Part shown: positions 33,434-64,000 of the stretch, in pieces
How positions within the stretch are numbered: position 1 is the stretch's first letter
Layout: the number at the start of each line of letters is the position of its first letter
Source of the DNA: Tetramitus jugosus
Taxonomy: Eukaryota > Protista > Heterolobosea
Length of the DNA stretch: 64,000 nt
Direction: 5' to 3'
Assembly (NCBI GenBank): GCA_937625935.1
Contig: OW569383.1
Location: forward strand, 372,001 to 436,000
Made by a program: the position numbers and the translations under genes
Notes under the pieces: generated by a model
Database searches by the model: none
Told to the model about the DNA's origin: nothing
What the model saw: the letters and a program-made list of their open reading frames with translations, nothing else

Positions 33434-34646
33434 TCATGGGACTTTTTGTTGACCAAAGTCCAAAGTTCGAAGAATGCCTCCATGTGTTCGCGCAGATTCC
33501 ATCAGAAGCTCGACATCACATTTCAAACATTCGGATGCATATTCGATAGCACGTCCATCGTTACGAACAGCTTGCATGACTAGTTCTCTGTCATTGCGCA
33601 ATTCTTTAGATGCATATCTCAATGCCAATCCATCATTCTTTACAGCTTCAAGTACCACTTCTCTGTCATTATGCCACTTGATTGGTGAAATCTTAAGAAT
33701 CCATCCAATCTGACGAGCAGCTGTCATTACTACCTCCTTGTCATTTCGAGGTACCTGTCCCGCATAAATTAAAACAATTCCTTCCTTCTGGAGAGCTTTC
33801 ATTACTATTTCTTTGTCATTGCGCAACTTTGGTGATGCATATCGAAGAGAAAATCCACTTGAAGACAATAAAGATTCCATTACCACTTCTCTTTCGTTCT
33901 GCAATTGTGAAGAAGCATATTTCAGAGCTTCTCCTGTCTTTTTCACCGCTATTAGCACTAATTGTTTATGATTACGCAACTCTTGCGATGCGAATTCAAG
34001 GCTACTTCCATCCACTGTCACTGCTTCCAAAACTACATCTATGTTGCTACATAAGTCTTGCGATGCAAAGCAGAGCGAACTTGGTATATTCTTCACAGCT
34101 TCCAATACAACATCTCTGTCACAGAGCAGTTCTTGAGAAGCATATTCAAGAGCTCTTCCATCTCTTTGAACAGCTTGAATGACTACTTGTTTGTCATTTC
34201 TCAAATCGTGAGATGCATATTTGAGAGCCAATCCAGAGTTTTTTACAACTTCCATCACTGTTGTCTTATCTCGACGCAGACTCTGGGAAACAAACTTTAG
34301 AGATAATCCATCGTTCTTCACTGCCTCCAGGGCAACTTGTTTGTTGTTGCGTAAGTCTTGTGACACATATTTTAAAGCACTTCTGGTCTGTACTGCTTTC
34401 ATTACCACCTCTCTATCATTGCACAATTCTGGTGATGCATATTGAAGTATCCATCCAACTAGGGATTGCTCACTGTGTAGTGGCATCATCACCACATCTC
34501 TGTCATTTTTCAAGTCATCAGATGCAAACCTCAAAGCTCCTATGCTGTTCTTCACTGCTTCAACAACTACTTCTTTATCATTCCTAAGTTCAGGTGAAAC
34601 AAATTGAAGAGTATCCACAAATGTTCACAGCTGTCATCACGACTTC
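33434..34646 (-). pseudogene. DUF4116-repeat protein gene with an apparent frameshift near 34610 (pseudogene, truncated gene or sequencing error)
   Basis: About 15 tandem ~25-aa repeats of the form 'ALxYASxELRNDKEVVxEAVKNxG'. The ORF-track start is GTG. One more repeat, 'EVVMTAVNICG', lies immediately upstream in a different frame. Confidence 0.7.
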
Positions 34647-36111: not shown

Positions 36112-37148
36112 TCCCTTTTCTTCGCTTTCGCTTTGGGCCTTGTTTTTATCGGTTGTTCTTTCTTTCCAACACCATTCTCTCAGAGAAAACAGAGGTTGTC
36201 AACCAATACACCATCTGGTTTAATACATGTGCAGCACATTTGCGATTCAATTTGTTTTTCCGTATCACGCAAAACAAACAAAGTCTCAATGGAATCAAAC
36301 ATGAAGAAATTCAAGCGATGTGAGAAAGACTATCGTATGTGTATGGCTGTAGTAACAGCAAATCATGACCGTAACACTATGACTTACTTTTTAGGTGCAA
36401 GGAGATGTCAAGACAATGTTCTATTATGCAAGTATGATTAACAATAGATTATTTACTTCGAATACTTTCTCATGCTCTCTCTCTGGTAACCATTGACACG
36501 TTTACAGTGATCTTGGATTCAGCAGACTTCAACATACCAGGATATCTATGTGGTTCGGTAAAGAATGTATTACCATCATGATCTAGTTCTGCTCTCAAGG
36601 TTGTTCTTGGACCAATTACACTGTATACTCTATATTGTCCAAAGAATTCTTAACATTCTCCTTATTTTCAACCAATAAGTCACCGCCTCCTTTGATAACA
36701 CTTCTCATATTGAACTGAGGTCAATGTCTTGTTGTGACCTTCAGATAACTTGTACACCAATGGAGTGATGGAAACAGTTGTAGGTTCTTCTGGCATCTCT
36801 TATTGATGAACCAGCTATTTACATAACTCCATCGTCATCATAATGTTGGTGCCGCATTCTATGATTCATCTTACTTGCTGTTTGCTATAAACAATCCGAT
36901 ACACAGTTTCATTCTGTTAAATCATTCTGTTAAATCATTGCTTCTATTTTCCCGATTCACTATCAATGAGATATGAGCTGCCGGTTGAAGTTGGACCAAG
37001 CAGCACACTTTCATTTACTTGCTAAAACACAAACAGTGTAAACCATGTCATTGTACCACTCATGAGAAGAGAGAAGGAGTTCTCAACGGTATTGGAGTAG
37101 TCATTTTGTTCAGTAGGTATTGAGAATTTATTGCTGGTGAACATTCTG

Positions 37149-40100
37149 TTATGACTGCCAAGCATTTCTTCTTCTTTCCAAATAGGGAGAAGTCTTGTTG
37201 ATCAAGTTAGCTTCACTCAATGAGCTAGTGTCCGGAGATGACATGTCAGACATTTCTACATCCATCGGCTGTGTGTATTTCCTCGACAACATGGTTCTTA
37301 ATTTGTTGTCATCTTCGTTCTTAACCTTGTACATTCTTCGAGCAAAACTAGAGAATTGTTCGTCTTCTAACGACGAGACATTCTTGTCCAGAACGAACTC
37401 AAACTTCCATGCGTCCAACTTGGCTTGTTTCTGTTTCTTTTTTCTCTTGGTGAGTATTCTCCAGAGTAAGAGGAAGGAGATGACCAGTAGCAGACCTAAC
37501 AATAGCAAGAGGAATAAAGACCCAGCTATGGATGCCACTGCAGTAACAACTCCCTTTGTAAATTGTTTCACTTCTTCAACAGCAGGAGTCACAACGATGA
37601 AATTTTTTGGAACGTCAGTAATGTTGCAAGTGTCATACTGGCATCCAATCCATATTCTATCGATTAGGACTGACACCACGGAATCTGAAACCTTTCTTTG
37701 AGGTTGGGTCAAACTTTGAGAAACTGCCAGGTAGCCTGTCGACAACCTTTGTTTGAACACATCAACGAGAGTTCTTTCGGTCTCGAATGACAAGGTACAA
37801 ACTTCAGAGTATCCTTGAATCACTTCGACATCTATTCGCCATGGTTCATCAGGAAGTGGATCAGAAGAATTAGTGGACACGTTTTGTGTCATGAGCCAGT
37901 TGTTAAATAATGTCTCGTTCATATGAATCATTTCTACCTCTGGTCTGACGAGCTTGAGGGAGAGTGTGTGTGGAACACCAAGTGAAAATCCAGGACAAGA
38001 TTCAGTGGCAGTGGAAACTAGGGATCCTAATTGATATGACAAAGATATTGTTTTCACGTCTTCAGAAACAACACTTACAGATGCTAATACATAATAGGAA
38101 TCGTCATGATCCGATATATACCATAGTTCAACAAGGTTACCTATCTGTCCCGGATCAATAACAAATTCGATAGAGAGTTGCTGATCAACCTGATCCACGA
38201 GTGCCATCTTGGATCTTACCATAGCTCTCGGATTCGAATCAGAGATGTATGAAGTGATTCTGGACATGGAACGACTAGAAAGCTCTTCAAACGGAATCCA
38301 GTCAATTGACAAAAGATTGTTCTGGGTTGGCTCAAAACTATTTAGCAAAGTATCTCTATCAAATGAATCATAGAATGTAAATAAGCTCGTATCAACATAG
38401 TAGAAGAATGCAGGTGAAATTCTTGGCGTAAATTCTCTGTTTAGCATTGTAACAGTTAGTTGTACTACATGATTATTTGCTTCTTCAAAAAGAGGAACCT
38501 CACACTCTACATGTCGAACATATACATTATTTGAAAGAACCTCTATTTTCATCTCTTCTCCATTATTTTTCTTCATCAGGAACGAACAAGTGATATTCCG
38601 ATCTGTAGAGAACCATGATCCATGAACAGTTATAATGTCGCCATGTTTAGCTGTAGTTGGATTGATACTGTGTATATGCGGCTGAAAGTAAATCAGTGAA
38701 ATTCCAGGTTGAGGAATAGGAGCAGAGCTTGTGACAGAATTGATAATAATCCGTGTAAACTCGACAGTCGATTCGCCATTTGGCCATACGAAGGATGGTT
38801 TGAAACATGCATCTCCAGTAAGCCCTATTGAGCGGCAGTCAAAAAGTTGGGCAGTTACATTGACTTTTGCATTTGTATCCTCCAGTGTAACTCTCGATTG
38901 ACTTTCTATTGTTAAGTGTAGTCCAGTTAACCGAATCCAAGTACTCGTTATAGAATCTGCAGGCACTCCAGAAGGATATAAATTATCAATATTCGGTTCC
39001 CATTTACCAAGAATTGTAAACTTTTTACCGTTTAACTCACTAGGATAGGTCGAAGTGAATAAGTCCATAACCTTGTTACGCGGAATTATAGAGAGTTGAT
39101 TTTTCGAAATATCATTGAGGTATACATAGGAATCGGACTCCAATTTCACACCAGCAAAGAATCCATCGTAGATATCAACAAGAATTAGTTGATTTCCGTG
39201 TACTCGTGATACAAAATTCCTGCGCATCACATGAACTTCGCCATTTACAAACAATAGCGCTTGGACATCTTCTATCGAAGGGAACGACTCTAACACAATT
39301 AGTTCTGAAACTTGATTAGACATAGAAACTTGAAGTATCACCATTGCACCACCCTGCTTCCTTTGTGCTAGAATAAAGAGAGTATCGCTCAGTGGGTCAA
39401 TAGTAACAAACCGGCTGTCATTTTCTTCCAAAAAAGGCAAATATTCCGTTAGTGTGTAAACTTGATCATTATTCTTGTTTGTTAAACTCAGAGAATGAAT
39501 TGTGATATCCTCCTTGACCGATACAATTATCAATGAAACTTTTCTGACAAAAACTGCGCAAGTACTCATATCTGGGATTGCCCGAGCAGGTGAAGCCCTC
39601 AGCAATGTTAATGATTGAGAGGAAACAGTGTAGATTCCTTCGTCTCTTATCAGATAGAAAGATCTTGAGTACTCACTGTAGAGTGTCTTTGAGGAGTTCA
39701 CTGAAGTGAAACTAAACACAGCTCTGCCAAAATTCATATCCACTAAAGAAATATTCTGCAGGTACCCATCAGGGGTAGAAACAAGTAAATATTCATGGCT
39801 CAATTCACTTTCACTCCTCACAATTTCACAATCTTTTCCAGAAAAACGTGGTTGACAAAGACAGTTATCAGGTGCAATGCACTCTCCTCTTCCACTACAG
39901 ACACTAGTTTGATTACCCAAATCACCGAAGCAGATGGGAATATCACATATATTAGATACATAACCATCGGCACAACTACAGAAGTCAGGTGTTCGGCAAG
40001 ATCCATGACCAGAACACACAGTTGATTCATTTGAGAGTGAACCGTGACACTGAACTATTTGGCACAGATCACCAAAATAACCATCTAAACAGGAGCAACT

Positions 40101-43100
40101 ATTGGGTTCAACACAGGCACCAACTCCGCTACAAACCAACGGATTTGAGGCTGCTAAATCATAACAAATAGGAACAGAACAATTAGTTCCAGTGTATTCG
40201 TTTGTACACAAACAAATATCTGGAGCTGTGCAGTTTCCTTTACCTGAACAAACCAAACTCGAATTTTGGCTAAAACCGAAGCAAATATTCAGCTCGCACC
40301 TATTTCCAGTTTTCCCATTATCACAAGAACAGACATCAGGAGCTAAGCAGTCTCCAAATCCGCTACACACACTTCTGTTATTTCCATCAGTACCAAAACA
40401 TATGGGAATTTCACACTCTTCCCCAGTGTACCCACTAGTACATTTACAATTATCAGGCAATATGCACGACCCATGTCCGTTACAAGTGTTCGAATCTGTT
40501 TCATTCAATCCAAAACATACATTGATTTCACATTGTAAACCAACTCTTCCTGCTCTACAAAGACAAGAGTCAGGAGCAATACAAGTACCATTTAAGTATG
40601 AACAAACCGCAACATCGGTCTCTAGCTTTCCATAACATAAAGGAGTATCACAATTAGGTCCGGTGTATCCTGCTTCAGCAAAACAAACACAATTGTTTGG
40701 AGAGACACATGTTCCATGACCTCCACAAACTAATGGATCAGTCTCATTTCGTGAAGAGCAAATGTTTAGATGGCACTGATCTCCTGTTCGACCTTCAAGA
40801 CATTCACATTTGTCCACGTCCGTGCAGGTCCCATTAGAGGAGCATACTGCAGGATCAGTCTCATTAACTCCAAAACACGTAGATAGCTGACATTCTAATC
40901 CTGTTCTTCCGAATGTTCGACTGCAATTGCATGTATCGGCATACACACAAGTACCAACACCAGAGCAGACATGGGGGAAGTAAGCAGCAACTCCGTAACA
41001 TTTTGGAATTGAACAATCCGCTCCTTCCCATCCATAGGAGCAGTTACATTTATCAACAGAGTAACATACTCCATGACCACTACAAACATTTGCATCAGAT
41101 TCATTTCGCCCATAACAAATATTCAACTCACATTCTGACCCTGTTCTACCTTCACCACACAGACATACATCTGTATACAGACAGTTTCCTCGACCAGAAC
41201 ATACATCCTCATAATTATTGGCAGCTATTCCAAAACAGATTGGAATATTACAATCAAACCCAGTCCATGAATTCCAGGTGCAGTTGCATTTGTGGGGTGC
41301 CACACATTTTCCATGTTGATTACACACGAAATCATCTGTTTCATTAAAACCAAAACAATAATTTAACTCACAATTGCTACCAGTTCTGCCTTCACTACAC
41401 CAACAACCATCCGGTTCATAACAGAATCCGTATCGAGAGCACACTGATCGGTTCGTGCCCCAAATACCATAACATAAGGGAATGCTACAATCTCTACTCA
41501 CCCATCCGTCCGTACAATTACATTTATCTGGCTGATAGCAAAGGCCATGACTTGAGCATACCTCAACATCAGTTGTATTCACTTCAAAACAACTTGGATA
41601 GAAACATTCAAGTCCAGAATATCCATAGTCACACTCACAGGTATCTGGAGAGAGACAGTTGCCATGATCAGAACAGACATTTGAAGTATCATTGGAAAGA
41701 ATTCCAAAACATATTGGATATTGACATTGAAGCCCAGCATAGCCAACATCACAAATGCATTCATCAGGTGAACTACAAATGCCATGCCCTGAACAGACTG
41801 AACTATCAACGTCCAACTTTCCATAACAATTGACATATTGACAATCAGTTCCATTGAATCCTGGCGAACAAGCACACTGATCTGGCAGTTTACAATATCC
41901 ACGACCATTACAAACAAAAGTCGAATTCAACTCAAGGATCCCGTTACATACATTCTGTTCACATTCTGCGCCACCGTAACCACGAGTACAGACACAAAAA
42001 TCAACGTTAATACAATTTCCGTGTCCTAAATGTGAGTTGCATGAAGGAGGAGTAGTGGTCAAATTTTTTCCGTAGCATGTCAACGGTATGCAGTCACCTT
42101 TGGCATCAAGTTTCGTTAGACAAGTGCAATTATTTGGTGCAACACACGTCCCATTCTTTCCATAGCCACAAGAGGCAGGATTTGTTGCATTCAGTCCGAA
42201 GCAAATTGGTGTGCTACAGAAACGGTCAGTATACCCAACGGAGCAATTGCATTTGTTGGGCGATACGCATGTACCATGGCCGGAGCAATCCAAATTCGTT
42301 GGGAGTACTAGTTCGATAGAAGTAGCTGGTGCTTGATAAATCGTTTCAACACCTGTGATTCTATCGAAATATCTACTATAGCATACAGGATAGCTGCAAT
42401 TTCCTCCTGTAAAACCAGGAATTGGAGAAGAGAGACATACACATGTCTCTGGCTCAAAACAATACCCTTTACCGCTACAGACTAGGGGATCATTTGTATT
42501 CCTACCATGGCAAATTGTGTATTGACATCTATCACCATTATAACCTGTTGTACAATTACATTCTCCTGGACCTATGCATGATCCACGAGAAGAGCAGACA
42601 CTGGGATCGTTTGACAACAACCCAAAGCAATTAATATATTGACATCTGTCTCCTGACCATTTTTTAGGATCGCAAATACATGTGTTTAAGTATTTGCACT
42701 CTCCACGACCAGAGCACACATTTGGAGTGTCGGTCATGTTGTAACCAAAACATGATGTGAATTCACAATTGTTTCCTGAGAAGCCTGGTTTGCATACACA
42801 TGTGTCTCTCGCAATACACGATCCATTTCCAGAACAAACATCTGGATCATCTGCTAGGATATTGAAGCAAGTGACTCCATTGTATAGTAACATTGAATGA
42901 GAAAATCCAGTTGAGAAGAACTCTGCGTACCGTTCCGTGAATTCACCACCTACGATTCTAGGCGTCATATGGTCCGCATTGGACGAATCTCCCATCTGAC
43001 CATTTGAGTTTGCACCCCAAGCAAATACTTTGCCAGCGTCAGTCAGTACAAATGTAGTGCCACTTCCACTCGAGCTAATACTCACAATATTGTAACCCAA

Positions 43101-55100: not shown

Positions 55101-58100
55101 ATCCGAAAGAATTCCAAAACAATATGTTCCATTGTAAATCATCAATGAGTGAGCACTTCCTGATGAGAATGAAACAATGAAGCTCGTTTGATTCTCAAAT
55201 CTGAAAGTTGGATGAGGGAACAGCACTTTGGACATTGTTGTTTCCAAACTCAAGTGCTTGTTGGCATTGTTTCCCCAAGCATAACTCAGTCCATCACTTG
55301 TTGTGACTTGAACACTGTCTGACCAAACACTTGCTGAAAGCACGGTGATGTTTTGAATTCCAATGACTCTCACAGGTGTTGTTGACATTGGAATTGTTGA
55401 GTTGATTCCGAGCTGACCGAATGAATTGTCACCCCATGCATACAAGAATCCATCTTCAGCAACTGCATAAGCTGTTTGTCTTCCTGCTGCAATTTTCTTG
55501 ACTGACAATCTTTTCAGTGGACCACCTACACATCTGGCATGGGTTGTGGAACTAACTCCATCACTCGCAACCTGACCTCGTGAATTATCTCCCCAAACAT
55601 ATACCTCTCCCTGATCTGTCAACCCCATTGAAAATGCCTCCCCCGCTGCTACTTGAATGAAAAAGATGTTGGCCAGTGCTTCTCCGAGTGCCACATTTGA
55701 TTGCTGTTCTACTGGTATACTCACAGTGGTACCGTAGACCCTACTGTCCCCTACTTGGTGGATCCAATTGCGTCCCCAACCGTAGACTTTGCCTGTTGAG
55801 ACGAGCAACAGCGCGTGTTGAGAACCACATTCTAACCCCACGACCCGCCCACCATTGTATTTGCTTGAAGATGAGGGCAAAATAGATGGAGAATTTGCAT
55901 TCATGCCCCAAACATACACTGTATTATCGCTGGTCAAAGCTAGTACGAAAGTCAATCCAACACAAGAATCAACAACCTGAGGCATTGCTTTCAGAATTCT
56001 CACTGGTCGATTTCGTTGAGTCGTAGTTCCATCTCCCAAGAGACCAAGCCAATTATTTATAGAGGTACCTGAACCCCATGAATATATTTCTCCATCCACA
56101 GTTAGGGCGAAGGAGTTTTCTATGCTCGCTTCCACTTGTTTAACATACTTCTTTGTGAGTGGATAGTAGGTTTTCGTAGCAGGTAAGTAGCGAGTTCCAT
56201 CATAGAAATCATCTCCTAGTTGGCCTTTGTCATTCCTTCCAAGAGAGTACAAGAGGCCAAACATTGATACTTCGCACCTCTCTCCTGAAAAGAACGTGTC
56301 ACAGGAGCATGAGTTATAATCGACACAGACACCACTTCCAGAGCAAACATCTGGATGACTCTCATTTAATCCAAAACATACATTTATGTTACAATCAAGA
56401 CCTAAGTAACCTGGTGAACAGACACATTCATCTGAAGATACACATGATCCTCTTGAGGAGCACACCTCATCATGTTCAGATAGAGTACCAAAACAGAAAG
56501 TGCCGTTGACTAACACTATAGAATGAGTCGAAGAGGCTTCAGCTCCGACAATAAAACTAGAATTATAAGGGTTTGATACTAAAGTTGGTGTTTTTGCAGA
56601 AAAGTTGGTCTCATCTCCCAATTGAAACGCTGAATTGTCTCCAAATCCCACCGCCGATCCATTTTTTAAAGTCACCAAAACATAATTGCTCCATTTTCCG
56701 GTCGTGATGAGCAAAGCATTTTCAATAGAAGTAAGGGTTGGAGATCTATGAGAGAGAGATGAGTTAGTTCCCAATTGGCCGACCTCATTTCCGCCCCAGG
56801 ACAAGAGTTGCCCTTCCGATGTGATGGCATACGAGGAATCTGCGCCGGCAGAAATGCTTACAACTTTCTTCCTCAAAAGCAATCCTTTCACTTGACGCGG
56901 ATGTCTATTGTTAATTAATGTTCCATCCCCCAATTGACCGTCTGAATTCCGTCCCCAAGAGTAGACATCCCCTCTGTTGGTCAAGGCTAAGCTATGGTAC
57001 TGTCCAGCGGATACCGAGATAACGTGCACATCAGAGAGTACTCCCTTGATAGGGCTAAAAGCTCCTACCCTCACAGGAACAGTTTCTATCTTGTCTCTCC
57101 CATAACCAACGGCACCATAGGACGAATCATCACCAAATCCCCACACTTGACCCTCTTGTGTTAAAACCAATGTATGCAGATGACCACAAGCCACTTGTAC
57201 CGGTGTTCCTGTAATTCCAGACAACAGTTGTGGAGAACTATTATTTGCAGAGTTACCTATACCCATTTGTCCAGAGATAAGTCCCGACGTTGTTCCGTTG
57301 GCAGTATTGAACCCCCACGAATATACCTCGTTGGTGCTCGCTATTGCTACTGTATGATATGTACCACTACAGATACTCAACACTTTTTTGTTCAGCCAAA
57401 CTCTGCTTGGATAGTGTCTGTTTGAGATTGTTCCAGTGCCTAATCTGAAATGGGAACCACTTCCCCAAGCAAATAAATCTCCTTGTGTAGAAATGGCGAA
57501 CGAAAGATCAGATCCAGAAGAGATTTGTTGGATTATTGTTTTTCTCAAGGATTCATAGGGTCTCACCCACTTAGTAGCGGGTATTGAATCACCAGTTCCT
57601 AGTTGACCGAGATGGTTGTTTCCTACAGAGATCAAAGTACCAGAGGCACGCTGTTCGCAATTGTTTCCCGCGTAACCCACAAAACATTTGCATGTATCAT
57701 ATGCAATGCATGTACCATGACCCGAGCAAACTTCAGACTGAGTGTTGTTGTACTGACGACAAGTCGTAAACTGACAAGATTCACCATAATAATTTTGGTC
57801 ACATTCGCAAGTGTCGGTGTCTGTGCAGTTCCCTCGAGTTGAACATGCCATCGTATCATCCATAGGATAATCAAAACAGAAGGTAGTGTTGAAGAGGACA
57901 ATACTAAACACATTCCCAGTGGATGCGGCTACAATTTTTCGATCCTTGAAGGGGTGTACAACGGGAGTTGGGACCGTCTTTGAGATTGTAGAACCATCCA
58001 CTGCCTGCCCTTGAGAATTCAATCCCCAAGAGAAGGCGGAGCCATCAGCTGAAATAGCTATAATCGTTTGATGACTTGCACTCACAGAGACTATCTTCAC

Positions 58101-61100
58101 CCCAATTAATCCAGAAACTAGAGTAGGATACAACCTTTTTGATTCCGTGCTGTTGATTCCTAGTTGCCCTACGGAATTATCACCCCATGAGTAGATTTCA
58201 CCAGTAGCCGAGAGAGCGTACGAAGAAAAAGCACACGCGGTCACTTGAATAATAGGGGCTCCCAACATTGATAATGAGACTCGAGATGGATGCACACTTG
58301 GAATGGTTGAGTTTTGTCCTAATTGCCCTACAGAGTTAGAACCCCATGTGTAAACCTCCCCGTTTCCACCTAGAGCTATACTATGTCTATCACCGACAGC
58401 AACATGAACAATGCGTATTGATGACAGTATTCCCTTGACAGGACTAGAAGTTGCAACCGGTGTAGGAACTATGCGGGTGTAGGCGTCACCCACACCCAGA
58501 CGTCCAAACTCTCCATTTCCCCAAGCATAGAGCTTCCCAGAAGAAGAGCGAGCTATTGCATGGTGTGTACCACAACTCACAGCAACTATTTTCTCATTGT
58601 TGGCCAAAGAAGGAAAAGTGATTGCTCTTGGATTTTTCGAGTAATAGTAGGTGCCCAAGCCCAACACACCCGAGATAGAAGGTGCCCAATGAGGATAATT
58701 ACAAGGACAAGCAGTTTCACTACAAGGTTTGTAGTTGTCCTTGCAGAAAATCGTCGCGTCAACAGTATTATAGCCCCAAGAGTACACTGTACCGCTAGAA
58801 GTAACAGCGATTGCATGATACCTTCCTGCACATGCACTAACAACCTGATGGTTGGTAAGAATATTCTTAGGTCTTATTGCTGTAGATGTTGTTCCGTCAC
58901 CTAAATTGTAGTAACTATTTTTACCCCATGCATACAAGGCATTCTTCCTTGTGATAGCCAGAGCGAAATCCCAACCTGCTGTTATGAACTTAACATGCTC
59001 CCCGTACGAAAGAGGATAAGATGTGCTGGTAAGAACCGTTTGACTTAAATAGTAGTCATCCCCCAGTTGTCCTGCTGTATTTGATCCGACAGTGTACGTC
59101 TCTCCATACAACCAAACACTACAATCTGAACCTGTGAATCCAGAGGAGCACGAACAGGAGTTGTGAGCGATACATATTCCCTGTCCTGAACACACCGAAG
59201 AATCTGTTGAATTTGTTCCAAAACAGGTTGTAAAACCACAATTCGGACCAAAGTAGCCCGACTGACAGATACACATGTCGGTTGCAACACAGATTCCTCT
59301 CCAAGAACATGCATAAGGATCATCAGAAAATAATCCATAACAATAGGTTCCATTCAATAGAATCAGAGAGTGCCGCCCCCCTGAAGAAACAGATACTATT
59401 GACCTGTTTGTGTAAGTTTGAGGGACAGGATTCACATACTTTTTGAACATTGGTGTAGGATGAGTCATCGACTCACTTCTTCCGTTCAACAGTTGGAAGT
59501 TCGATCCTTTTCCCCAACCATATCCATCTCCGTTCAAATGTCCTGCAATAACACTGTCCTCAAAAATGCTAGAGGACAAAGAATGGATTGATGTTAAGTT
59601 CAGCTTGATAGGGATGGGAGCAGGACCGATCGGCGAACCAATGCCCAGTTGATAATTCGAATTATCTCCCCACGAGTACACACTTCCCTCTGAACTGAGT
59701 CCATAAGATGATTTTGCACCTGCTGATATAGATTTGAAAGCTACTTTGTACATGGTTTCCTTGTAGAGCATCTTCGGAAATCTTCTCAATTTGGGGATTT
59801 TCTCAACTTCATCACCAATCTGTTCGTTGTCATTCCTTCCCCATACGTATATCTCCCCTTTCTCACTAAGAGCCATACTATGATACAATCCAGCAGCTAT
59901 CGAGATTATTTTAATATTGTCGAGAGTTCCTCCAGAGTTTAGATTTTGGGCCACCGGAACAGGAACCAATTCCTGAGCTCCAACACCATATTGTCCATTA
60001 CCTAATTGACCAAACTCATTATTTCCCCACCCCCATACTTCTCCGTTCCTCAATATGACCAAACAATGATACAACCCACATGAAACTGAAACTGCTTCTG
60101 CCGGGATTCCTGACACCTCATGAGGTGAGGTTCTTTGATAAATGTACCCCTGTCCTAAACTACCGATAATTGTGGGTTGAGAGATGCACAGAGATGGAGA
60201 AGAGTTAGGACAACATTGTGTATCAGAACACCAGTTATAGAAGATAGTACACGTTTCACAAGACCTATAGCTGTACCGCACATTACCGTTCAATGTGTTA
60301 GAACCCCAGGAGTACACCTTTCCATCTGTTGAAACTGCGGCAGCATGATACATGGAGGCAGAGGCTGAATTAAAAGTATTTGTCGAGAAAAGTCGCGGTC
60401 TATAGTATAAACCATAAGCTGAAGTTCTTCCCCACTCAAATATTTTTCCATCAAGAGTGATGGCCAACGAGAAGAATTGGCCTGCCGATATGAATTTGAC
60501 ATAAGCATCTGTGGACAAAGGAAAAGAGGTCATCCCTAACAGAGAACGACTCAAATAGGAATCATCACCTAGTTGCCCCTGATCGTTGTACCCTGCTGCA
60601 TACACATACCCAAAGACTGTTTTCTCACAATTCTCACCGGAATACAAACCATTGGTACAAGAACAGATATTATGAGCAATACATGTACCCCTACTGGAGC
60701 AAACACTTGGGTTTGTGGAATTTACCCCAAAACAGATCGTGGCTTCACATTCTTCCCCAAAATACCCAGAATCGCAAGTACAAATATCATCTGATGTGCA
60801 TCTACCTCTCCAGGAACAAACCAACGGGTCATCAGCCAACATACCGAAGCATCGTGTGCCATTAAACAACAAGAGAGAGTGCGTAGAACCTGCGCCAACT
60901 CCTACTAGACGAGTCGTAGGGAAGTGTATGTTGACTGTTTGAGCCACAGGTTCCAATCTTTGCTCTGTGGTTTTATCTCCTAGTATTGAATAAGTATTCG
61001 TACCCCAAGAGTAACCAACACCCTCAATTGTGATGCCCGTAACCCAGTTAGCCGATTTGCTCGGACATATCTCTCTAATAAACACACCCTCCAAAAGCCT

Positions 61101-64000
61101 CACGAGTCCAGGTATCTTTCGATAAGATCCAACAACTAGTGAGGAGTCTCCTAACAGGCCACCGGCGTTGTGTCCCCATGAAAAAACTGTTCCATTCTTT
61201 GAAACTGCGAAAGAAGTACTCATGGCTGCTGAAATGTGCACAACCTGTTTGGGAAGTGACCTTTCCAATAGAACTGGGACATTTTTTCCTGTAGTAGTGT
61301 TGTCTCCCAACTGACCATTTGGATTCGCTCCCCATGAATATACTTCTCCAAAAGAACCTAATGCAAGCGAATGATGGGCACCTGCTGCTAACTTGATAAT
61401 GTTCGAGAGCCCCCACACCTTCTGGGCCGTCCATGAGTGGCTCGTCGTTCCTGTACCCAGTTGACCATAGGTCCCGTAACCAAACGAGTAAACAGTTCCA
61501 ATACTGGTGAGCAACAAAGAATGAGAGGTTCCACAAAACACTGAAATAGGAATTTCTCCATTTTCCATTCCAATAATCTGTGTTGGTGTGTCATTAAATG
61601 ATGCACTAGTGACAAAAAGACCCCAACCCCAGACTGTTCCATCTAGTTTAACTACTACAACACGATAATTACCAGCACAGCAATCACCAACGTTGCTCAT
61701 TAAATGATGTGGTTTAGTATGATTGTATTTCGATCCATCTCTTAGTTGCCCCCAGGTAAAGAGTTCTCCATCCTTTGACAGAGCAACGGAAAACGATACT
61801 CCAGCTTCCACCTTCTTCAGTACCTTCTTGGTAAGAGAACCTTCCAGGAGCACTAATTCTGCGGTGTATCCTGATGAAGGAATTTCCTCGCTTGCTAGTT
61901 GACCGTAGTTACTAAGTCCCAGACCATACCCAATACCACTCACATCATTCTCACAATTCGAACCGGAATAGCCAGAGTGACAAAGACATAAATCAACATC
62001 TGTACAAACGCCTTTTCCTGAACAAACATTTGGAGCATCATTGTCAATACCGTTACATTGAAAAGAATTACAATTCGAACCCGAGACTGCTTCTTCACAC
62101 GAACATTGATTGAAACTCGTACAATTTCCATGATAGGAACAAACTAACAGATCATCACTCAACACTCCGAAACATGAGAGAGAATTATTGTAGATCACGA
62201 GAGTATGCTGGCTTCCTACTGCTAAACCAACGACCTGGCGGTCAGGAAAAAAAAGCCCATACTTGTTGGGGATGAGTTGCTTCGTAGTTGTTCCATCCCC
62301 AAGTTGACCATATCCATTACTTCCCCACACATATGCAGTCGATTGAGAAATAACACCAACTGAAGTGCCATAAGTTGATATTCTACGAGCAACATGACCC
62401 GAGAGAGTGGTGACAGGTCGATAAGTAGGCGAGTATTGGATGGTGAGAGAATTAATTCCCAATTGACCTTCCAGGTTACTGCCAGCAGAGTATACGATAC
62501 CATCGGCAATAACGTATGACGTGCAACAGGAACCTGCTATCTCTGTTACCTTTTTTCCGAAGAGAGGAGACGTATTCATAGCTTTTGGCTTCCTTACAGC
62601 TGTCCCAGAAGAACCGTCTCCCAACTGACCATTCCAGTTGTAACCCCATCGGTACAATGTTCCATCATCTGCGATAGCCATCGAGAAGTGGCTACCAGCC
62701 GTTATTGCGGCCACCTTCCGCTTGTAAAGCAAACCAGTCAATAGCACAGGCCTGGGGAGATATCGTCTATCTGCTACAAGTCCGTCACCCAGTTGTCCAT
62801 GAACATTGTAACCCCAGGTCAGGATAGTTCCATTTCTTAACATTGCTATGCTGTGATAGGCACCACAAGCAACAGATACCACCTCTCCCCCCAATAGTGA
62901 TCTTTCAATCAAAAACGGAGACGAGAAGTGAGAATTGTTTCCTGTTCCAAGTTGACCATAGCTATTATCACCAAACGACCAAACAGATCCAGTGTCATCA
63001 ACAACCATGGAATGTATGTATCCTGCACACACTGACACCACTTTTCCCTGAAACGGTCCAGGTATCAATACTGGGGTGAACTTGGCAGTGAGAGATCCAT
63101 CTCCTAACTGTCCTCTGTAGTTCTCTCCCACTCCGAACAACGAACCATTTGACAACAACACAAGAGAAAAAGATTGCCCAACTACTGCGAAGTGGACAGA
63201 TTGTTGAGAAAAGGCCGAAGAAACGACAGGTGACAATCGTGTCAATCCAGACTTTCCGAGGTTATCTCCGAGTTGTCCCACTGTATTCTCTCCTGAACCA
63301 TAGAGAAATCCTTCATCTTTTTTTTCACATGTAAGGCCAGAGTATCCTTGATCACAGAGGCAAGTATCGATAGTCATACACTGTCCATGACCAGAACACA
63401 CTGTTGGATCAGAAGAATTCAACCCATAGCAAAATGGTAAACTACAATCTCCTCCAGTGTATCCGTCAATACAAGAACAGACATCATTCCCTGTACAGTT
63501 ACCATGGTTGGAACATACCAAAGGATCAGATTGGAAAATAGAAAAACAAATAACCGAATCGACTAGAAAAAGAGTGTGGGAGGAACCGATAGCAACCTGA
63601 GAGATTTTGCTTAAAGAGATTGGAGGTACAATGTTCTGGACATTTGTTATGTGCAAGCCTGTTGATCCTATTCCAAACTGGCCGTTGGAATCTGTCCCCC
63701 AACCACAAAGTTCGTTCTCTGTGTCAACAGCAAAAACATTCTCGGCCACAAAACTAACATGAATTGTCTTGATCGGACGACCAGATAGTATAGTTGCTTC
63801 GACAGGGACCGTCGAGTATGATGTTACGGCGATGTTTCCAAGCATTCCCGCATTGTTATCTCCCCAAGACATGAGTGTTCCATTAGAAAACACTGCAAAT
63901 GTCGATCTGGGCCCGGCCCCGATCGCGACTGTAACTTCTCCAAGCGTAATTTTGTAAGGCGAAGGTACTGTTGCTCCATCAAGGTTACTCGAACCTAGTT
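37149..64000 (-). CDS. Giant type-I membrane protein: (RCC1 propeller + 2 EGF)n - 25 EGF stalk - beta-rich region - IPT/TIG-like domains - TM - tail; 5' end beyond the window
   Basis: 8,914-aa ORF in the track starts at a GTG, and the frame stays open to 64000 ('LGSSNLDGATVPSPY...STFAVFSNG'). RCC1 blades read 'WGxNxxGQLG...IAAGxxHSLAL' and EGF units read 'CFG...D..VCS.RG.C...D.C.C..GY.G..C'. The TM helix 'VVTAVASIAGSLFLLLLLGLLLVISFLLLW' is followed by 'RILTKRKKKQK'. Confidence 0.93.
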   Translation of the reverse strand, partial: LGSSNLDGATVPSPYKITLGEVTVAIGAGPRSTFAVFSNGTLMSWGDNNAGMLGNIAVTSYSTVPVEATILSGRPIKTIHVSFVAENVFAVDTENELCGWGTDSNGQFGIGSTGLHITNVQNIVPPISLSKISQVAIGSSHTLFLVDSVICFSIFQSDPLVCSNHGNCTGNDVCSCIDGYTGGDCSLPFCYGLNSSDPTVCSGHGQCMTIDTCLCDQGYSGLTCEKKDEGFLYGSGENTVGQLGDNLGKSGLTRLSPVVSSAFSQQSVHFAVVGQSFSLVLLSNGSLFGVGENYRGQLGDGSLTAKFTPVLIPGPFQGKVVSVCAGYIHSMVVDDTGSVWSFGDNSYGQLGTGNNSHFSSPFLIERSLLGGEVVSVACGAYHSIAMLRNGTILTWGYNVHGQLGDGLVADRRYLPRPVLLTGLLYKRKVAAITAGSHFSMAIADDGTLYRWGYNWNGQLGDGSSGTAVRKPKAMNTSPLFGKKVTEIAGSCCTSYVIADGIVYSAGSNLEGQLGINSLTIQYSPTYRPVTTLSGHVARRISTYGTSVGVISQSTAYVWGSNGYGQLGDGTTTKQLIPNKYGLFFPDRQVVGLAVGSQHTLVIYNNSLSCFGVLSDDLLVCSYHGNCTSFNQCSCEEAVSGSNCNSFQCNGIDNDAPNVCSGKGVCTDVDLCLCHSGYSGSNCENDVSGIGYGLGLSNYGQLASEEIPSSGYTAELVLLEGSLTKKVLKKVEAGVSFSVALSKDGELFTWGQLRDGSKYNHTKPHHLMSNVGDCCAGNYRVVVVKLDGTVWGWGLFVTSASFNDTPTQIIGMENGEIPISVFCGTSHSLLLTSIGTVYSFGYGTYGQLGTGTTSHSWTAQKVWGLSNIIKLAAGAHHSLALGSFGEVYSWGANPNGQLGDNTTTGKNVPVLLERSLPKQVVHISAAMSTSFAVSKNGTVFSWGHNAGGLLGDSSLVVGSYRKIPGLVRLLEGVFIREICPSKSANWVTGITIEGVGYSWGTNTYSILGDKTTEQRLEPVAQTVNIHFPTTRLVGVGAGSTHSLLLFNGTRCFGMLADDPLVCSWRGRCTSDDICTCDSGYFGEECEATICFGVNSTNPSVCSSRGTCIAHNICSCTNGLYSGENCEKTVFGYVYAAGYNDQGQLGDDSYLSRSLLGMTSFPLSTDAYVKFISAGQFFSLAITLDGKIFEWGRTSAYGLYYRPRLFSTNTFNSASASMYHAAAVSTDGKVYSWGSNTLNGNVRYSYRSCETCTIFYNWCSDTQCCPNSSPSLCISQPTIIGSLGQGYIYQRTSPHEVSGIPAEAVSVSCGLYHCLVILRNGEVWGWGNNEFGQLGNGQYGVGAQELVPVPVAQNLNSGGTLDNIKIISIAAGLYHSMALSEKGEIYVWGRNDNEQIGDEVEKIPKLRRFPKMLYKETMYKVAFKSISAGAKSSYGLSSEGSVYSWGDNSNYQLGIGSPIGPAPIPIKLNLTSIHSLSSSIFEDSVIAGHLNGDGYGWGKGSNFQLLNGRSESMTHPTPMFKKYVNPVPQTYTNRSIVSVSSGGRHSLILLNGTYCYGLFSDDPYACSWRGICVATDMCICQSGYFGPNCGFTTCFGTNSTDSSVCSGQGICIAHNSCSCSSGFTGSDCSVWLYGETYTVGSNTAGQLGDDYYLSQTVLTSTSYPLSYGEHVKFITAGWDFALAITRKNALYAWGKNSYYNLGDGTTSTAIRPKNILTNHQVVSACAGRYHAIAVTSSGTVYSWGYNTVDATIFCKDNYKPCSETACPCNYPHWAPSISGVLGLGTYYYSKNPRAITFPSLANNEKIVAVSCGTHHAIARSSSGKLYAWGNGEFGRLGVGDAYTRIVPTPVATSSPVKGILSSIRIVHVAVGDRHSIALGGNGEVYTWGSNSVGQLGQNSTIPSVHPSRVSLSMLGAPIIQVTACAFSSYALSATGEIYSWGDNSVGQLGINSTESKRLYPTLVSGLIGVKIVSVSASHQTIIAISADGSAFSWGLNSQGQAVDGSTISKTVPTPVVHPFKDRKIVAASTGNVFSIVLFNTTFCFDYPMDDTMACSTRGNCTDTDTCECDQNYYGESCQFTTCRQYNNTQSEVCSGHGTCIAYDTCKCFVGYAGNNCEQRASGTLISVGNNHLGQLGTGDSIPATKWVRPYESLRKTIIQQISSGSDLSFAISTQGDLFAWGSGSHFRLGTGTISNRHYPSRVWLNKKVLSICSGTYHTVAIASTNEVYSWGFNTANGTTSGLISGQMGIGNSANNSSPQLLSGITGTPVQVACGHLHTLVLTQEGQVWGFGDDSSYGAVGYGRDKIETVPVRVGAFSPIKGVLSDVHVISVSAGQYHSLALTNRGDVYSWGRNSDGQLGDGTLINNRHPRQVKGLLLRKKVVSISAGADSSYAITSEGQLLSWGGNEVGQLGTNSSLSHRSPTLTSIENALLITTGKWSNYVLVTLKNGSAVGFGDNSAFQLGDETNFSAKTPTLVSNPYNSSFIVGAEASSTHSIVLVNGTFCFGTLSEHDEVCSSRGSCVSSDECVCSPGYLGLDCNINVCFGLNESHPDVCSGSGVCVDYNSCSCDTFFSGERCEVSMFGLLYSLGRNDKGQLGDDFYDGTRYLPATKTYYPLTKKYVKQVEASIENSFALTVDGEIYSWGSGTSINNWLGLLGDGTTTQRNRPVRILKAMPQVVDSCVGLTFVLALTSDNTVYVWGMNANSPSILPSSSSKYNGGRVVGLECGSQHALLLVSTGKVYGWGRNWIHQVGDSRVYGTTVSIPVEQQSNVALGEALANIFFIQVAAGEAFSMGLTDQGEVYVWGDNSRGQVASDGVSSTTHARCVGGPLKRLSVKKIAAGRQTAYAVAEDGFLYAWGDNSFGQLGINSTIPMSTTPVRVIGIQNITVLSASVWSDSVQVTTSDGLSYAWGNNANKHLSLETTMSKVLFPHPTFRFENQTSFIVSFSSGSAHSLMIYNGTYCFGILSDDENACSRRGACVGPDECLCDEGYLGNDCSTNICFGKNHTDPRVCSSHGACVAQDTCSCQTMYLGSRCNESVHGLLYAVGHNDYGQLGINLDDLYISIPSPTSYPLTNGVHVSYVATGRHTSFAITTKGELYSWGLGGSGGSLLGDGSIQRNRPVRIMTNTKQVLQACAAKGFAIALTRHNTTIWGTGYNLPTVLTYSEDKGVEELVVECACGTDHVLVRTNTGRVYGYGLNDFQQLGHKYVYGADIDRITLVQANVSQGELLGFERVISIAAGERYSMALTDRGEVFVWGDNSRGQIADGTTSSTDTYHARRVGGLLKRLSVKKIAAGRQTAYAVAEDGFLYAWGDNSFGQLGINSTIPMSTTPVRVIGIQNITVLSASVWSDSVQVTTSDGLSYAWGNNANRHLILNTTTDVLFYPLKIFASNIQTSVIVGISAGESHSMMIYDGTYCFGILSDDENACSRRGACVGPDECLCDEGYLGNDCSINVCYGMNATDPDICSGNGHCVALDSCSCDSQFLGIKCDKPVFGLVYAVGDNSHGQLGDDYSVDRLLPVQTWFPLSYGEYAQSLVAGDQNSYAVTMANKLYSWGRGRLGDSSVSMINRPYPILPNTPRILRACSCLTFGIAITEDNLLFKWDNTLSAAPLNTLDGRDFITQLECGGEHVLLRTTNGSIYGLGSNQFEQLGDHVLYGQTVSVPTKIQGDAYNGELLGLKKVVSIAAGNHYSMALTDRGEVFVWGDNSRGQVASDAVSNSVTSNGRKVEHQFQKNAAIRIAAGRQTAYAIAEDGFLYAWGDNSFGQLGINSTIPMSTTPVRVIGIQNITVLSASVWSDSVQVTTSDGISYAWGNNANRHLSLQTTMPKVLFPHPTFRFENQTSFIVSFSSGSAHALIIYNGTYCFGILSDDENACSRRGACVGPDECLCDAGYLGNDCSINVCYGLNSTDPNVCSGKGYCVALDTCSCEVFTTGAKCELSSYGILYAIGNNQYGQLGDDFDDPQRILPTQTFYPLSHGAYVKCIEAGNQTSYALTLEGSLYSWGRGDSVNVNRGLLGDGTISLRRRPVRIMNDHSHVIHMCSSVDYAVAVTQDNMIYVWGSNGAVPTIRSAPSNNYDNSTVMELACGWQHTLIRTSKGRVYGFGTNKYNQLGQIGSSISSITLIQATANRGELLGFEKVISIAAGESYSMALTDRGEVFVWGDNSRGQIADGTISNTDTYHARRVGGLLKRLSVKKIAAGRQTAYAVAEDGFLYAWGDNSFGQLGINSTIPMSTTPVRVIGIQNITVLSASVWSDSVQVTTSDGLSYAWGNNANRHLSLETTMSKVLFPHPTVRFENQTSFIVSFSSGSAHSLMIYNGTYCFGILSDDENACSRRGACVGPDECLCDAGYLGNDCSINVCYGLNATDPDICSGNGHCVALDSCSCDSQFLGIKCDKPVFGLVYAVGDNSHGQLGDDYSVDRLLPVQTWFPLSYGEYAEFLTTSSDNSFALTVAEVLYSWGRGSVGASSLLGDGSVTQRNRPKTILNGYNIVAACASARYVAAASGNNSVLSWGGNSNLPSVLRPPMENYVDTTIKTLVCGAQHTLLLTSNGKVYGWGNNLHHQLGEQVWYSGQLDTPCPVQGNESRGELLGFEKVISIAAGESYSMALTDRGEVFVWGDNSRGQIADGTISNTDTYHARRVGGLLKRLSVKQIAAGRQTAYAVAEDGFLYAWGDNSFGQLGINSTIPMSTTPVRVIGIQNITVLSASVWSDSVQVTTSDGISYAWGNNANRHLSLQTTMPKVLFPHPTVRFENQTSFIVSFSSGSAHSLMIYNGTYCFGILSDDENACSRRGSCVGPDECLCDAGYLGNDCSINVCFGLRATDPHVCGGKGHCVALDTCSCSFQHSGLQCEDIVYGLLYATGTNNWGQLGDDYYFSQTVAVQTAYPLTHAKFVKHVSAGPENSFAVSIEGELYSWGRGGTSLLSLLGDGSFTNRNRPVRILGGSKFVHVCVGASHAFALTDDREKIFYWGKNSALPHTLALPSDNFGGGKVEELACGNQHLLIRTTNGSVYGWGQNDKTQIGGLSEYDSSLTQTRKIQANAGHGELLGFEKVISIAAGESYSMALTDRGEVFVWGDNSKGQIADGTTTRTDTYHARRVGGLLKRLSVKKIAAGRQTAYAVAEDGFLYAWGDNSFGQLGINSTIPMSTTPVRVIGIQNITVLSASVWSDSVQVTTSDGLSYAWGNNANRHLTISNVSSIISYPFKMHRQEYQSSSVLSFASGTSHSLMIYHGIFCDGVLADDVSVCSFRGICTSDDFCLCMGDYGGTNCSIATCHGLPATHPLVCSGHGSCLYEDTCICDSGHYGTTCNSTDQQFMFASGDDTSSQLGDGFFISRNYPRQASLLTDQKIRFVSAGAGSSYAVSLDRGVFAFGNNDQGQLGDNTTYTRYYPIQLFEDKSIIRLVACSGYTLAVDSNHQVYSWGTNTHGQLGTGNTEPSLVPVNITQYFALETIVDIACGHTHSLAISASGRVFAWGSNTFGELGIGNNMNVVSFPTVVGGVLNIKKIVMVAAGNYHTLALNEDGSVYSWGRNNMGQLGDGTTKSRSLPYRVHSNDVFGKEPVIAIAAGIESSYTLLRNGSLFSWGSNTPSAQLGENSVVISRNYPEIVSLDIDHPILSISVGKNANFLILVVSNGTAHGWGVNSNGQLGDYTFMSRNYSSAVGNTIPERYITSVSAGTTHSLFLYSGLSCFGILFDDPSVCSWRGNCTALDRCECAFTYGGKDCSVAQCSGVNATEPNVCSGHGRCLSLDTCVCFQGFSGSNCEVESYGYLYASGQDSFAQLGVRGIGFRPTVERSTLFYSTPVNLVAPSYEYSLIKTVSGEIYSWGKNWHGQLGDGTTISKGVQQHILSGSTIIGLCGGINHAMALDSNGTVFAWGSNQYGQIGMNSPQDLQLTPTQVTGELLTEDIVAIACGGYHSMALSFNGSVYTWGFNLDGELGIGDFVSKYTPVKVGAILTRKRIIQIAAGKFHSLALDSDGAVYSWGLNDKSQLGDTTNIDKFLPIQIPGLYGKPVSQVTASSSFSMAITMSNSLYSWGNNRHGQLGDGTTTSKKNPTLVTVLPDVRILGVSARESFVHVLTNNRTLFSWGENSFGQLGNGNYSETIVGSVVQVQQQFPNIYPTTVASGDNFTFYLFNGTACFGKFADDPSVCSSQGNCTAQDHCECPPDYNAPDCSGFYCFNYYPNDTRVCSGRGACLAADSCVCLPGYIGDDCSQVVNGYAFSLGKGSIGQLGNGYNLPQKHPVAVGGELFGTVVSHVSSGKDYSIAITVTGEVFGWGLNDRGQLGDGTTITRLLPTAPLGLSGVKAVTGCNGVAHTVIVDSNGQVYTWGYNYRGQLGLGDFADKHEPVLVSGDLQGRKVVQTVCGEAHTAVLIDDGTVYAWGQNDAGQLGNGDNQLSSTPLQVGVGVIDQIVISKLASGWNHVIGIGPYGLLYVWGSNSFGQLGDGVSFNRYSPTPLLNSQFKGKTPISISGSEENTYVIFADGSVFAWGGASRGQIGDNHTSIQRRRYPVRLYDERIQDSRSIFSGRNYVFVLKSNGSSLSWGINNVGQLGNGEISSMESLPVPVVNRYSHRFIHHIAASFEHTLFLYNGTTCFGFLADDENSCSGRGQCVNDNSCMCRDQFLLSDCSGVTCNGILNIDPAVCSGHGVCIPNNTCVCHPNRKGSNCDGVTMGFLFGTGKGSKGELVQGTTHSTNKIIKSISLNTIPVQYVGAGQEFSIILRGDGRMYSVGANSLGQLGDNTPVSRTSLVLTEFSKKNLTATHVAVGYSSVIVTTTGGSLYSWGNNQQGQLGIGQQIISSQSPVLVMPLKSTKMSFVSCGRVHCLGLSASGSVYSWGHNELGQLGDGTQDSIKSGGRPIRVLSIFGIKNAATVFAGAYHSLATTVDGTLYSWGDDSRCQQGQGHPSVKSLVPVKVSGLESEIVVQVSGGEYFSCALTLKKQVWCWGANSRGQLGINSTIDQCLPTRLEALLGYNIVSISSSGSGTTFVLTDAGKVFAWGANSNGQMGDSSNADHMTPRIVGGEFTERYAEFFSTGFSHSMLLYNGVTCFNILADDPDVCSGNGSCIARDTCVCKPGFSGNNCEFTSCFGYNMTDTPNVCSGRGECKYLNTCICDPKKWSGDRCQYINCFGLLSNDPSVCSSRGSCIGPGECNCTTGYNGDRCQYTICHGRNTNDPLVCSGKGYCFEPETCVCLSSPIPGFTGGNCSYPVCYSRYFDRITGVETIYQAPATSIELVLPTNLDCSGHGTCVSPNKCNCSVGYTDRFCSTPICFGLNATNPASCGYGKNGTCVAPNNCTCLTKLDAKGDCIPLTCYGKNLTTTPPSCNSHLGHGNCINVDFCVCTRGYGGAECEQNVCNGILELNSTFVCNGRGYCKLPDQCACSPGFNGTDCQYVNCYGKLDVDSSVCSGHGICSSPDECICDVGYAGLQCQYPICFGILSNDTSNVCSDHGNCLSPDTCECDYGYSGLECFYPSCFEVNTTDVEVCSSHGLCYQPDKCNCTDGWVSRDCSIPLCYGIWGTNRSVCSRYGFCYEPDGCWCSEGRTGSNCELNYCFGFNETDDFVCNQHGKCVAPHKCNCTWNSWTGFDCNIPICFGIAANNYEDVCSGRGNCLYTDVCLCGEGRTGSECELNICYGRNESDANVCSGHGVCYSVDKCNCSYGWEGADCSIPKCYGVAAYFPHVCSGVGTCVYADTCNCSRTFGRTGLECQLSTCFGVNETDPAVCSSNGTCTDVDKCECLEGRTGDQCHLNICSSRNETDPLVCGGHGTCVSPNNCVCFAEAGYTGPNCDTPLCYGKLETDVAVCSYLNGTCIAPDSCLCRAGRVGLQCEINVCFGLNETDSNTCNGHGSCILPDNCKCTSGYTGEECEIPICFGTDGNNRSVCSGFGDCLAPDVCSCDNGKTGNRCELNICFGFSQNSSLVCSGKGNCTAPDICLCTNEYTGTNCSVPICYDLAASNPLVCSGVGACVEPNSCSCLDGYFGDLCQIVQCHGSLSNESTVCSGHGSCRTPDFCSCADGYVSNICDIPICFGDLGNQTSVCSGRGECIAPDNCLCQPRFSGKDCEIVRSESELSHEYLLVSTPDGYLQNISLVDMNFGRAVFSFTSVNSSKTLYSEYSRSFYLIRDEGIYTVSSQSLTLLRASPARAIPDMSTCAVFVRKVSLIIVSVKEDITIHSLSLTNKNNDQVYTLTEYLPFLEENDSRFVTIDPLSDTLFILAQRKQGGAMVILQVSMSNQVSELIVLESFPSIEDVQALLFVNGEVHVMRRNFVSRVHGNQLILVDIYDGFFAGVKLESDSYVYLNDISKNQLSIIPRNKVMDLFTSTYPSELNGKKFTILGKWEPNIDNLYPSGVPADSITSTWIRLTGLHLTIESQSRVTLEDTNAKVNVTAQLFDCRSIGLTGDACFKPSFVWPNGESTVEFTRIIINSVTSSAPIPQPGISLIYFQPHIHSINPTTAKHGDIITVHGSWFSTDRNITCSFLMKKNNGEEMKIEVLSNNVYVRHVECEVPLFEEANNHVVQLTVTMLNREFTPRISPAFFYYVDTSLFTFYDSFDRDTLLNSFEPTQNNLLSIDWIPFEELSSRSMSRITSYISDSNPRAMVRSKMALVDQVDQQLSIEFVIDPGQIGNLVELWYISDHDDSYYVLASVSVVSEDVKTISLSYQLGSLVSTATESCPGFSLGVPHTLSLKLVRPEVEMIHMNETLFNNWLMTQNVSTNSSDPLPDEPWRIDVEVIQGYSEVCTLSFETERTLVDVFKQRLSTGYLAVSQSLTQPQRKVSDSVVSVLIDRIWIGCQYDTCNITDVPKNFIVVTPAVEEVKQFTKGVVTAVASIAGSLFLLLLLGLLLVISFLLLWRILTKRKKKQKQAKLDAWKFEFVLDKNVSSLEDEQFSSFARRMYKVKNEDDNKLRTMLSRKYTQPMDVEMSDMSSPDTSSLSEANLINKTSPYLERRRNAWQS
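39828..42869 (-). repeat. Tandem array of 25 EGF-like repeats (~39-41 aa, six Cys each) forming the stalk of the giant protein
   Basis: Counted by hand from 'CFNILADDPDVCSGNG' to 'CFGDLGNQTSVCSGRG...KDCE'. Confidence 0.9.
42870..64000 (-). repeat. Array of 15 complete plus 1 partial RCC1 propeller modules (~1.3-1.5 kb each) separated by EGF pairs
   Basis: Each module starts '(L/Y)xxxGxNxxGQLG' and ends 'HSxxxxNG(T)x'. Exactly two EGF units follow each one, except the last propeller, which runs into the stalk. Confidence 0.88.
48436..55490. repeat. Six near-identical ~240-bp core DNA blocks, with longer shared flanks in subsets, inside propellers 6-11
   Basis: The block starting 'aagtgc(c/t)tgttggcattgtttcccc' begins at 48436, 49807, 51175, 52546, 53887 and 55252. 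Spacings are 1371, 1368, 1371, 1341 and 1365 nt, all multiples of 3. Confidence 0.92.

Follow-up and report, generated by a model that had tools for sequence, protein, structure and literature searches.

What kind of protein is encoded by an open frame of almost 27 kb in an amoeba, and what might the organism use it for? The question arises from the window analysed here, a 64,000-nucleotide stretch of Tetramitus jugosus contig OW569383.1 (C40:372001-436000). To our knowledge, the prey-capture and adhesion receptors of Heterolobosea, a lineage far from animals and Dictyostelium, are essentially unknown, and the family of 0.5-1 MDa proteins to which the giant protein belongs, with propellers carried on EGF units, supplies concrete, testable receptor candidates.

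Gene model and assembly

The frame is open without a stop for 8,949 codons within the window (window:37152-63998, minus strand), bearing out the uninterrupted ~26.9 kb of the original prediction and extending past it. The contig has 7.3 kb more sequence beyond the window end, in which the frame runs on to extended position 64895, for a total of 9,248 codons without a stop (extended positions carry on the window numbering, and L004 positions are extended positions minus 63000). Further on, where an ATG and signal peptide had been proposed as the thing to look for, is a predicted first exon whose product is basic and then hydrophobic, as expected of a signal peptide, and a predicted intron joins it in frame to the giant exon. 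Lack of a signal peptide, one of the original grounds for refutation, therefore does not apply. Since the signal peptide has a separate exon, description of the gene as intron-less was wrong. The predicted layout is as follows.

Window 37149-64000, minus strand: the window part of exon 2, a 27.7-kb open frame, with layout as in four paralogues
L004:1879, minus strand: predicted start of exon 2, 879 nt beyond the window end
L004:1880-1938, minus strand: predicted intron, 59 nt, GT-AG, phase-1
L004:1939-2020 (extended 65020-64939), minus strand: predicted exon 1, 82 nt, signal peptide

Four paralogues likewise begin with a hydrophobic exon and have a phase-1 intron at the matching place, and in the homologue P0002 the signal peptide is in a single frame with the ectodomain. 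The predicted joined product, checked for frame and length, has 9,270 aa (~994 kDa); exon 2 was the reference in all searches. Because two more in-frame ATGs are present upstream, the start codon taken is the best candidate.

A GGGTTT telomere begins at extended 70417, ~5.4 kb from the giant gene, with a divergent kinase-like gene in between (L004:2502-3929, plus strand). The neighbors on the other side are unrelated, namely a TRIP12-like HECT/WWE ligase (window:25781-30184, minus), a DUF4116 repeat protein (33437-34624, minus) and an F-box/LRR protein (8159-11302, plus).

A haplotype break is evident at C40:436860 (L004:1860), 860 nt past the window end and 19 nt inside exon 2. Contigs from all three DNA runs (two samples from one study) diverge there from the reference into telomere repeats, read depth beyond it goes from 41.6 to 28.9 and from 64.7 to 38.7, and SNPs are absent until L004 2453. 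A second haplotype or copy, 2-3% divergent and constituting about one third of the molecules, seems to be telomere-ended inside the giant gene, without its promoter and signal exon. That one haplotype looks truncated would suit an explanation in which the repeat array is mis-assembled or the gene is an unexpressed relic. However, this is very improbable: the CCAP 1588/3C assembly (26.3 Mb, 55 scaffolds plus mitochondrion) derives from PacBio HiFi reads (PMC11106597), for which mis-assembly is unlikely because no exact internal repeat is longer than 244 nt, and 9,248 stop-free codons, purifying selection and recurrence of like architecture in independent data sets all count against it.

Domain architecture

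From its signal peptide, the predicted protein proceeds through an EGF unit, 16 repeats of an RCC1 propeller plus two EGF units, a stalk of 25 EGF units and a base (six-blade propeller, two Ig/IPT sandwiches and a ConA/L-lectin-fold domain) to a TM helix and a tail. RCC1/WD40_RLD and teneurin-like EGF Pfam matches occur all along. Each propeller with its EGF pair is termed a module, and modules are assigned to slots shared by the family. All features are on the minus strand.

56271-64000: modules 1-6, being slots 1-6 (RCC1 propeller and EGF pair), from the module alignment
48081-56270: modules 7-12, being six slot-7 copies, 52-70% identical, with mosaic DNA tracts
42879-48080: modules 13-16, being slots 8-11, the best conserved slots by module/slot comparison
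39816-42878: stalk made of 25 EGF units in tandem, each of 39 aa with six cysteines, teneurin-like by Pfam
39015-39800: predicted six-bladed, non-RCC1 beta-propeller, from AlphaFold and structure comparison
38406-39014: two beta-sandwich domains, the first assigned to no family, the second IPT/TIG (Pfam 24.9 bits, above cut-off)
37614-38402: predicted ConA/legume-lectin-like jelly roll, from structure comparison
37461-37550: single transmembrane helix (TM peak at aa 8827), with a basic cluster after it
37149-37460: cytoplasmic tail of 103 aa, with a Trp/acidic/basic motif conserved in the family

Where at least 16 propellers had been counted there are exactly 16, the first only partly within the window, its module beginning 748 nt beyond the window end. 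The earlier count of 55 EGF units holds in the window (15 pairs and a tandem run of 25 that takes in the stalk's first pair) and becomes 56 with the extension. Modules 4 and 5 have Cys-rich loop insertions. The strict period of a propeller and two EGF units, originally ascribed to the protein at large, applies to the distal ~7,400 aa and not to the remainder. N-glycosylation sequons, described as abundant, number 130 in comparison with 92 +/- 9 in 300 shuffles (shuffle maximum 112), and the single TM helix, basic stop-transfer and tail are also as predicted. With the signal peptide, the sequon excess and the cysteine pair described below, assignment as a type-I surface protein displaying extracellular RCC1 propellers on EGF pairs is upheld. 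As read from sequence, the architecture, the signal peptide/TM topology and the ordering of eleven propeller slots across paralogues and a distant homologue are well established.

The 777 aa adjoining the membrane have, apart from the one IPT match, no Pfam annotation, and the folds of the base come from AlphaFold predictions (pLDDT 88.6 and 91.5). For the predicted propeller, ROS1/ApoER2 YWTD, Kelch and Vps16 structures tie at Z 11.7-12.2 with rmsd ~4, so that there is no single best family; YWTD identity was considered and is unsupported, given the tie with Kelch and others. The predicted jelly roll has a ConA-like fold, with phage CBM, GH16 enzymes and L-type lectin domains all at VIA Z ~16 (rmsd 3.2-3.5, ~190-200 aligned residues) and with a Sialidase-like CBM as the Atlas lead; this domain has no Pfam match, and its alignment no GH16 ExDxxE-like motif. 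Exposed loops of the lectin fold, modelled at low confidence, carry RR/RK-x-L-like basic motifs that could be processing sites, both in the region of window:37690-37700 and in P0002, P0016, P0017 and P0031. In the tail, whose motif is conserved in paralogues and metagenomic homologues, a scan revealed no NPxY, no YxxPhi uptake motif and no catalytic domain.

Type of propeller

In the 16-module alignment each domain has the seven ~52-aa blades of an RCC1-like (RLD) propeller, some of them degenerate, and Pfam gives full-length PF25390 matches as well as PF00415. The propeller profile scores 325 bits with UVR8, 307 with RPGR, 289 with HERC2 and 210 with RCC1. BLIP-II reaches 72 bits, and the BLIP-II type put forward originally is rejected in favor of the UVR8/HERC type. 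Most propellers hold 2-4 Cys. A pair in blades 2 and 3, present in 12/14 and 14/14 Tetramitus propellers versus 1/14 and 2/14 bacterial ones, presumably forms a disulphide. A tree of bacterial and eukaryotic propellers gives no resolved descent from the bacterial multi-RCC1 proteins.

Resemblances to known receptors

The nearest designs are LDLR, LRP1 and megalin (LRP2), which are likewise very large type-I proteins with propellers alternating with EGF units, adjacent propeller ends, a stalk rich in EGF units and a tail with no catalytic domain. However, the propellers here are seven-blade RCC1 and not six-blade YWTD, the base has IPT and lectin-fold domains, and the length is about twice that of megalin. 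No LDL-A Pfam match, no YWTD motif or Pfam match, no calcium-binding EGF (a motif scan of the giant protein gave 0) and no NPxY is present. The term 'megalin-like' is thus apt for the design, and no feature that defines the LDLR family accompanies it; the protein converges on the LRP/megalin design using another type of propeller.

Extracellular RCC1-like propellers had been considered bacterial, but a eukaryotic precedent exists in plant CRINKLY4/ACR4, with an extracellular seven-blade RCC1/BLIP-II/UVR8-like propeller containing disulphides, a Cys-rich domain and one TM helix (PMC4617170; 10.1101/2020.08.10.245050); the propeller carries a putative ligand groove (10.1101/2020.08.10.245050). 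The propeller profile of the giant protein matches ACR4 at E 1e-5. CRINKLY4/ACR4 has a TNFR-like domain, a kinase and a single propeller whose short blades each carry a disulphide, whereas the 16 propellers here are long-bladed, have one Cys pair apiece and are accompanied by EGF units but no kinase; with 2-4 Cys in most propellers and no kinase in the 103-aa tail, the protein is not a CRINKLY4 member. Neither is it a teneurin, as its topology is type I rather than type II, NHL propeller and YD shell are absent, and the likeness is confined to EGF_TEN/EGF_Teneurin matches.

Giant EGF-free multi-RCC1 proteins are common in bacteria among the matches listed. Those at the surface (e.g. Verrucomicrobia cadherin/FN3 types) have 5,000-8,000 aa and many RCC1 repeats and are apparently extracellular, but they have no EGF spacers, mostly do not have the Cys pair and use other anchoring domains. 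Closer to home, Naegleria fowleri FDP41_004997 (XP_044560383.1; E 5e-6, 21% identity over 396 aa) shares the signal peptide, the base and the one TM helix and has six EGF units, but is 1,197 aa long with no RCC1 propellers. In ROS1/Sevenless and in plexin/MET ectodomain bases a propeller is also followed by beta-sandwich domains near the membrane (Foldseek/VIA); this likeness is at the level of fold only (8-14% identity, with ties to unrelated propellers), and the giant protein is without their kinase or GAP domain.

Slots and selection

Pairs of modules within the giant protein mostly show 27-40% identity, and in a tree each slot clusters with the same slot of paralogues. P0002 matches slots 1-11 in order, one to one, at 46-62% identity. 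The number of propellers in the family varies from 8 to 16, with slot 7 present as six copies in the giant gene and four in its nearest paralogue; by slot assignment, the giant gene is an 11-slot form enlarged by slot-7 amplification after loss of a Cys-rich insertion. The slot-7 copies are mosaics in which DNA tracts of 92-100% identity, which extends to synonymous sites, are interspersed with tracts of ~45-60%, a signature of gene conversion or unequal crossover. A hypervariable half and a constant half was tried as a general rule for slot 7 and abandoned, the homogenized tracts being different in the two genes.

Between paralogues pN/pS is ~0.2-0.3, and, as far as sequence comparison goes, the giant gene is demonstrably under purifying selection. 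In blades 1-3 of the six slot-7 copies pN is 0.32-0.43, versus ~0.25 for orthologous slots of the two genes. Conservation within slots is 0.35 and 0.29 for putative ligand-face loops versus 0.43 for the opposite face. No positive selection was found, with no pN>pS at the putative ligand face or slot 7, and no aromatic hot-spot is conserved across the propeller faces.

Relatives in Tetramitus and elsewhere

Six other loci in the assembly (G000; 26.35 Mb, 56 contigs) share modules and base, with open frames of 8,381, 6,971, 6,882, 6,312, 5,514 and 3,388 codons; paralogues on C43, C38, C28 and C14 were read in part, and the giant gene is the largest family member read here. The paralogue at C38:329036-344233 has split frames (1666, 5067 and 3388 codons) and a base that continues without an in-frame TM helix, with introns, frameshifts or a decaying copy as alternatives. 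A further locus, C15:176577-179636 (1,020 codons), has two EGF units and the same base without RCC1 propellers, and is likely a short form of the family resembling N. fowleri FDP41_004997.

A different output is exemplified by C51:196898-211036, read over its full length, where slots 1-6 and an EGF stalk are followed by REJ, GPS and several TM helices in polycystin-1-like fashion; by Pfam and TM scan REJ, GPS and multiple TM helices are all absent from the giant protein. Slots 2-6 of this C51 gene share ~95% identity with their counterparts in a neighboring single-TM paralogue at C51:153531-174176, and by this identity a recent ectodomain swap or conversion is indicated. RCC1 and REJ matches also co-occur on C28 (~36500-50600) and in two C2 frames. 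At C51:249415-260845 a 2,163-codon RCC1-EGF frame precedes a 2,598-codon frame with RCC1 and REJ matches, probably one interrupted gene.

Elsewhere, among the matches listed (protein searches covered lengths outside ~3,200-4,900 aa), the architecture recurs in P0002 (7,087 aa), P0031, P0010, P0032 and fragments from metagenomes and sequencing runs, while an EukProt protein, P0228, joins an RCC1-EGF ectodomain to multi-TM (7TM) and RGS. A word-index search of giant proteins with the C-terminal region gave no match; an exhaustive HMMER search with that region recovered homologues. In GCA_016850925.1 (JAESGV010000163.1) a homologue extends over >25 kb in many called pieces, probably due to introns, and its stalk numbers 50 EGF units or more. 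No description of an RCC1-EGF bead-string receptor was encountered in the searchable portions of the literature, N. fowleri and Acrasis papers included, in keeping with the earlier impression that no such protein has been characterized. The giant protein is one of a family that is undescribed as far as searched, though each of its domains has a known fold.

What the protein may do

RCC1, UVR8 and BLIP-II bind proteins via one particular face of the propeller. In the module alignment the propellers here start at strand C and end after strand B, which by RCC1 topology would place both ends on one face, the opposite of that used for binding. Tentatively, at a probability of about 0.45, this ~1-MDa type-I membrane glycoprotein is a long multivalent antenna for capture or adhesion. 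Judging from the RCC1 fold, its propellers would hang sideways from an unbroken EGF filament held by disulphides, leaving the face normally used for binding free and pointing outward. The 25-EGF stalk and the propeller/IPT/lectin-fold base might lift the array, on a rough estimate, ~100-250 nm off the membrane. Many different low-affinity sites could then act together to hold particulate targets avidly, bacterial prey or substratum being the most plausible of these. The tail, non-catalytic but with its conserved motif, may relay binding via an adaptor to uptake/actin machinery. Reach and valency would shift through gene conversion and through unequal crossover, propeller numbers ranging from 8 to 16. 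Avidity-based capture is the best fit for a long stalk bearing slots that are distinct and separately conserved, and since conservation runs slot by slot, single domains can be expressed and tested. The missing NPxY and YxxPhi count against capture and uptake, as does the loop result, since with no pN>pS the variability may be relaxed constraint; so does the one third or so of culture molecules that seem to be without exon 1, from which one copy appears dispensable in culture.

Several of the same observations could be accommodated by a structural surface filament (glycocalyx, cyst-wall or flagellar-hair) whose propellers are spacers or self-association beads rather than ligand sensors. Slot order fixed over long divergence suits a folded or polymeric superstructure, and heavy glycosylation (by sequons), lack of a catalytic or uptake motif and faces without a selection signal are all congenial to it. 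It is nevertheless unlikely, as slot number varies and the same ectodomain is found on REJ-GPS multi-TM and 7TM-RGS outputs, which implies sensing. Those outputs are what commends a sensory or mechanosensory co-receptor, the single-TM forms acting with REJ/GPS polycystin-1-like, RGS or kinase paralogues; the near-identical slots shared by the two C51 genes and the joining of RCC1 and REJ on C28 and C2 are in its favor, but with neither REJ, GPS nor signalling domain in the giant protein itself, it is rather unlikely.

Fungal HET WD40 arrays and Dictyostelium Tgr proteins offer analogues for self/non-self or mating recognition, in which the slot-7 array would be a strain-specific barcode shuffled by conversion. 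The unequal slot-7 copy numbers of the closest paralogues, the raised pN of slot-7 blades 1-3, the subtelomeric position and a second haplotype that differs at 14/30 variant codons are what such a barcode would lead one to expect. However, synonymous sites of these blades are saturated, implying that they are old and not provably fast, the homogenized patches are unlike between the two genes, and pN is never above pS in the one strain represented, making recognition of this kind decidedly doubtful.

A bolder reading, which is unlikely, would assign ligands slot by slot; recombination would move the ectodomain between silent, REJ/GPS, RGS or kinase outputs, and the slot-7 array would make new specificities, in effect a rapidly re-shuffled prey or kin repertoire evolved independently at megalin scale in heterolobosean amoebae.

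Sharing of the ectodomain with REJ/GPS outputs provides a link to the early evolution of polycystin-1/adhesion-GPCR-like sensors. Genome-wide there are ~20 further RCC1 frames of 1,000-1,400 codons and ~40 frames with REJ, numbers that represent large expansions of surface receptors.
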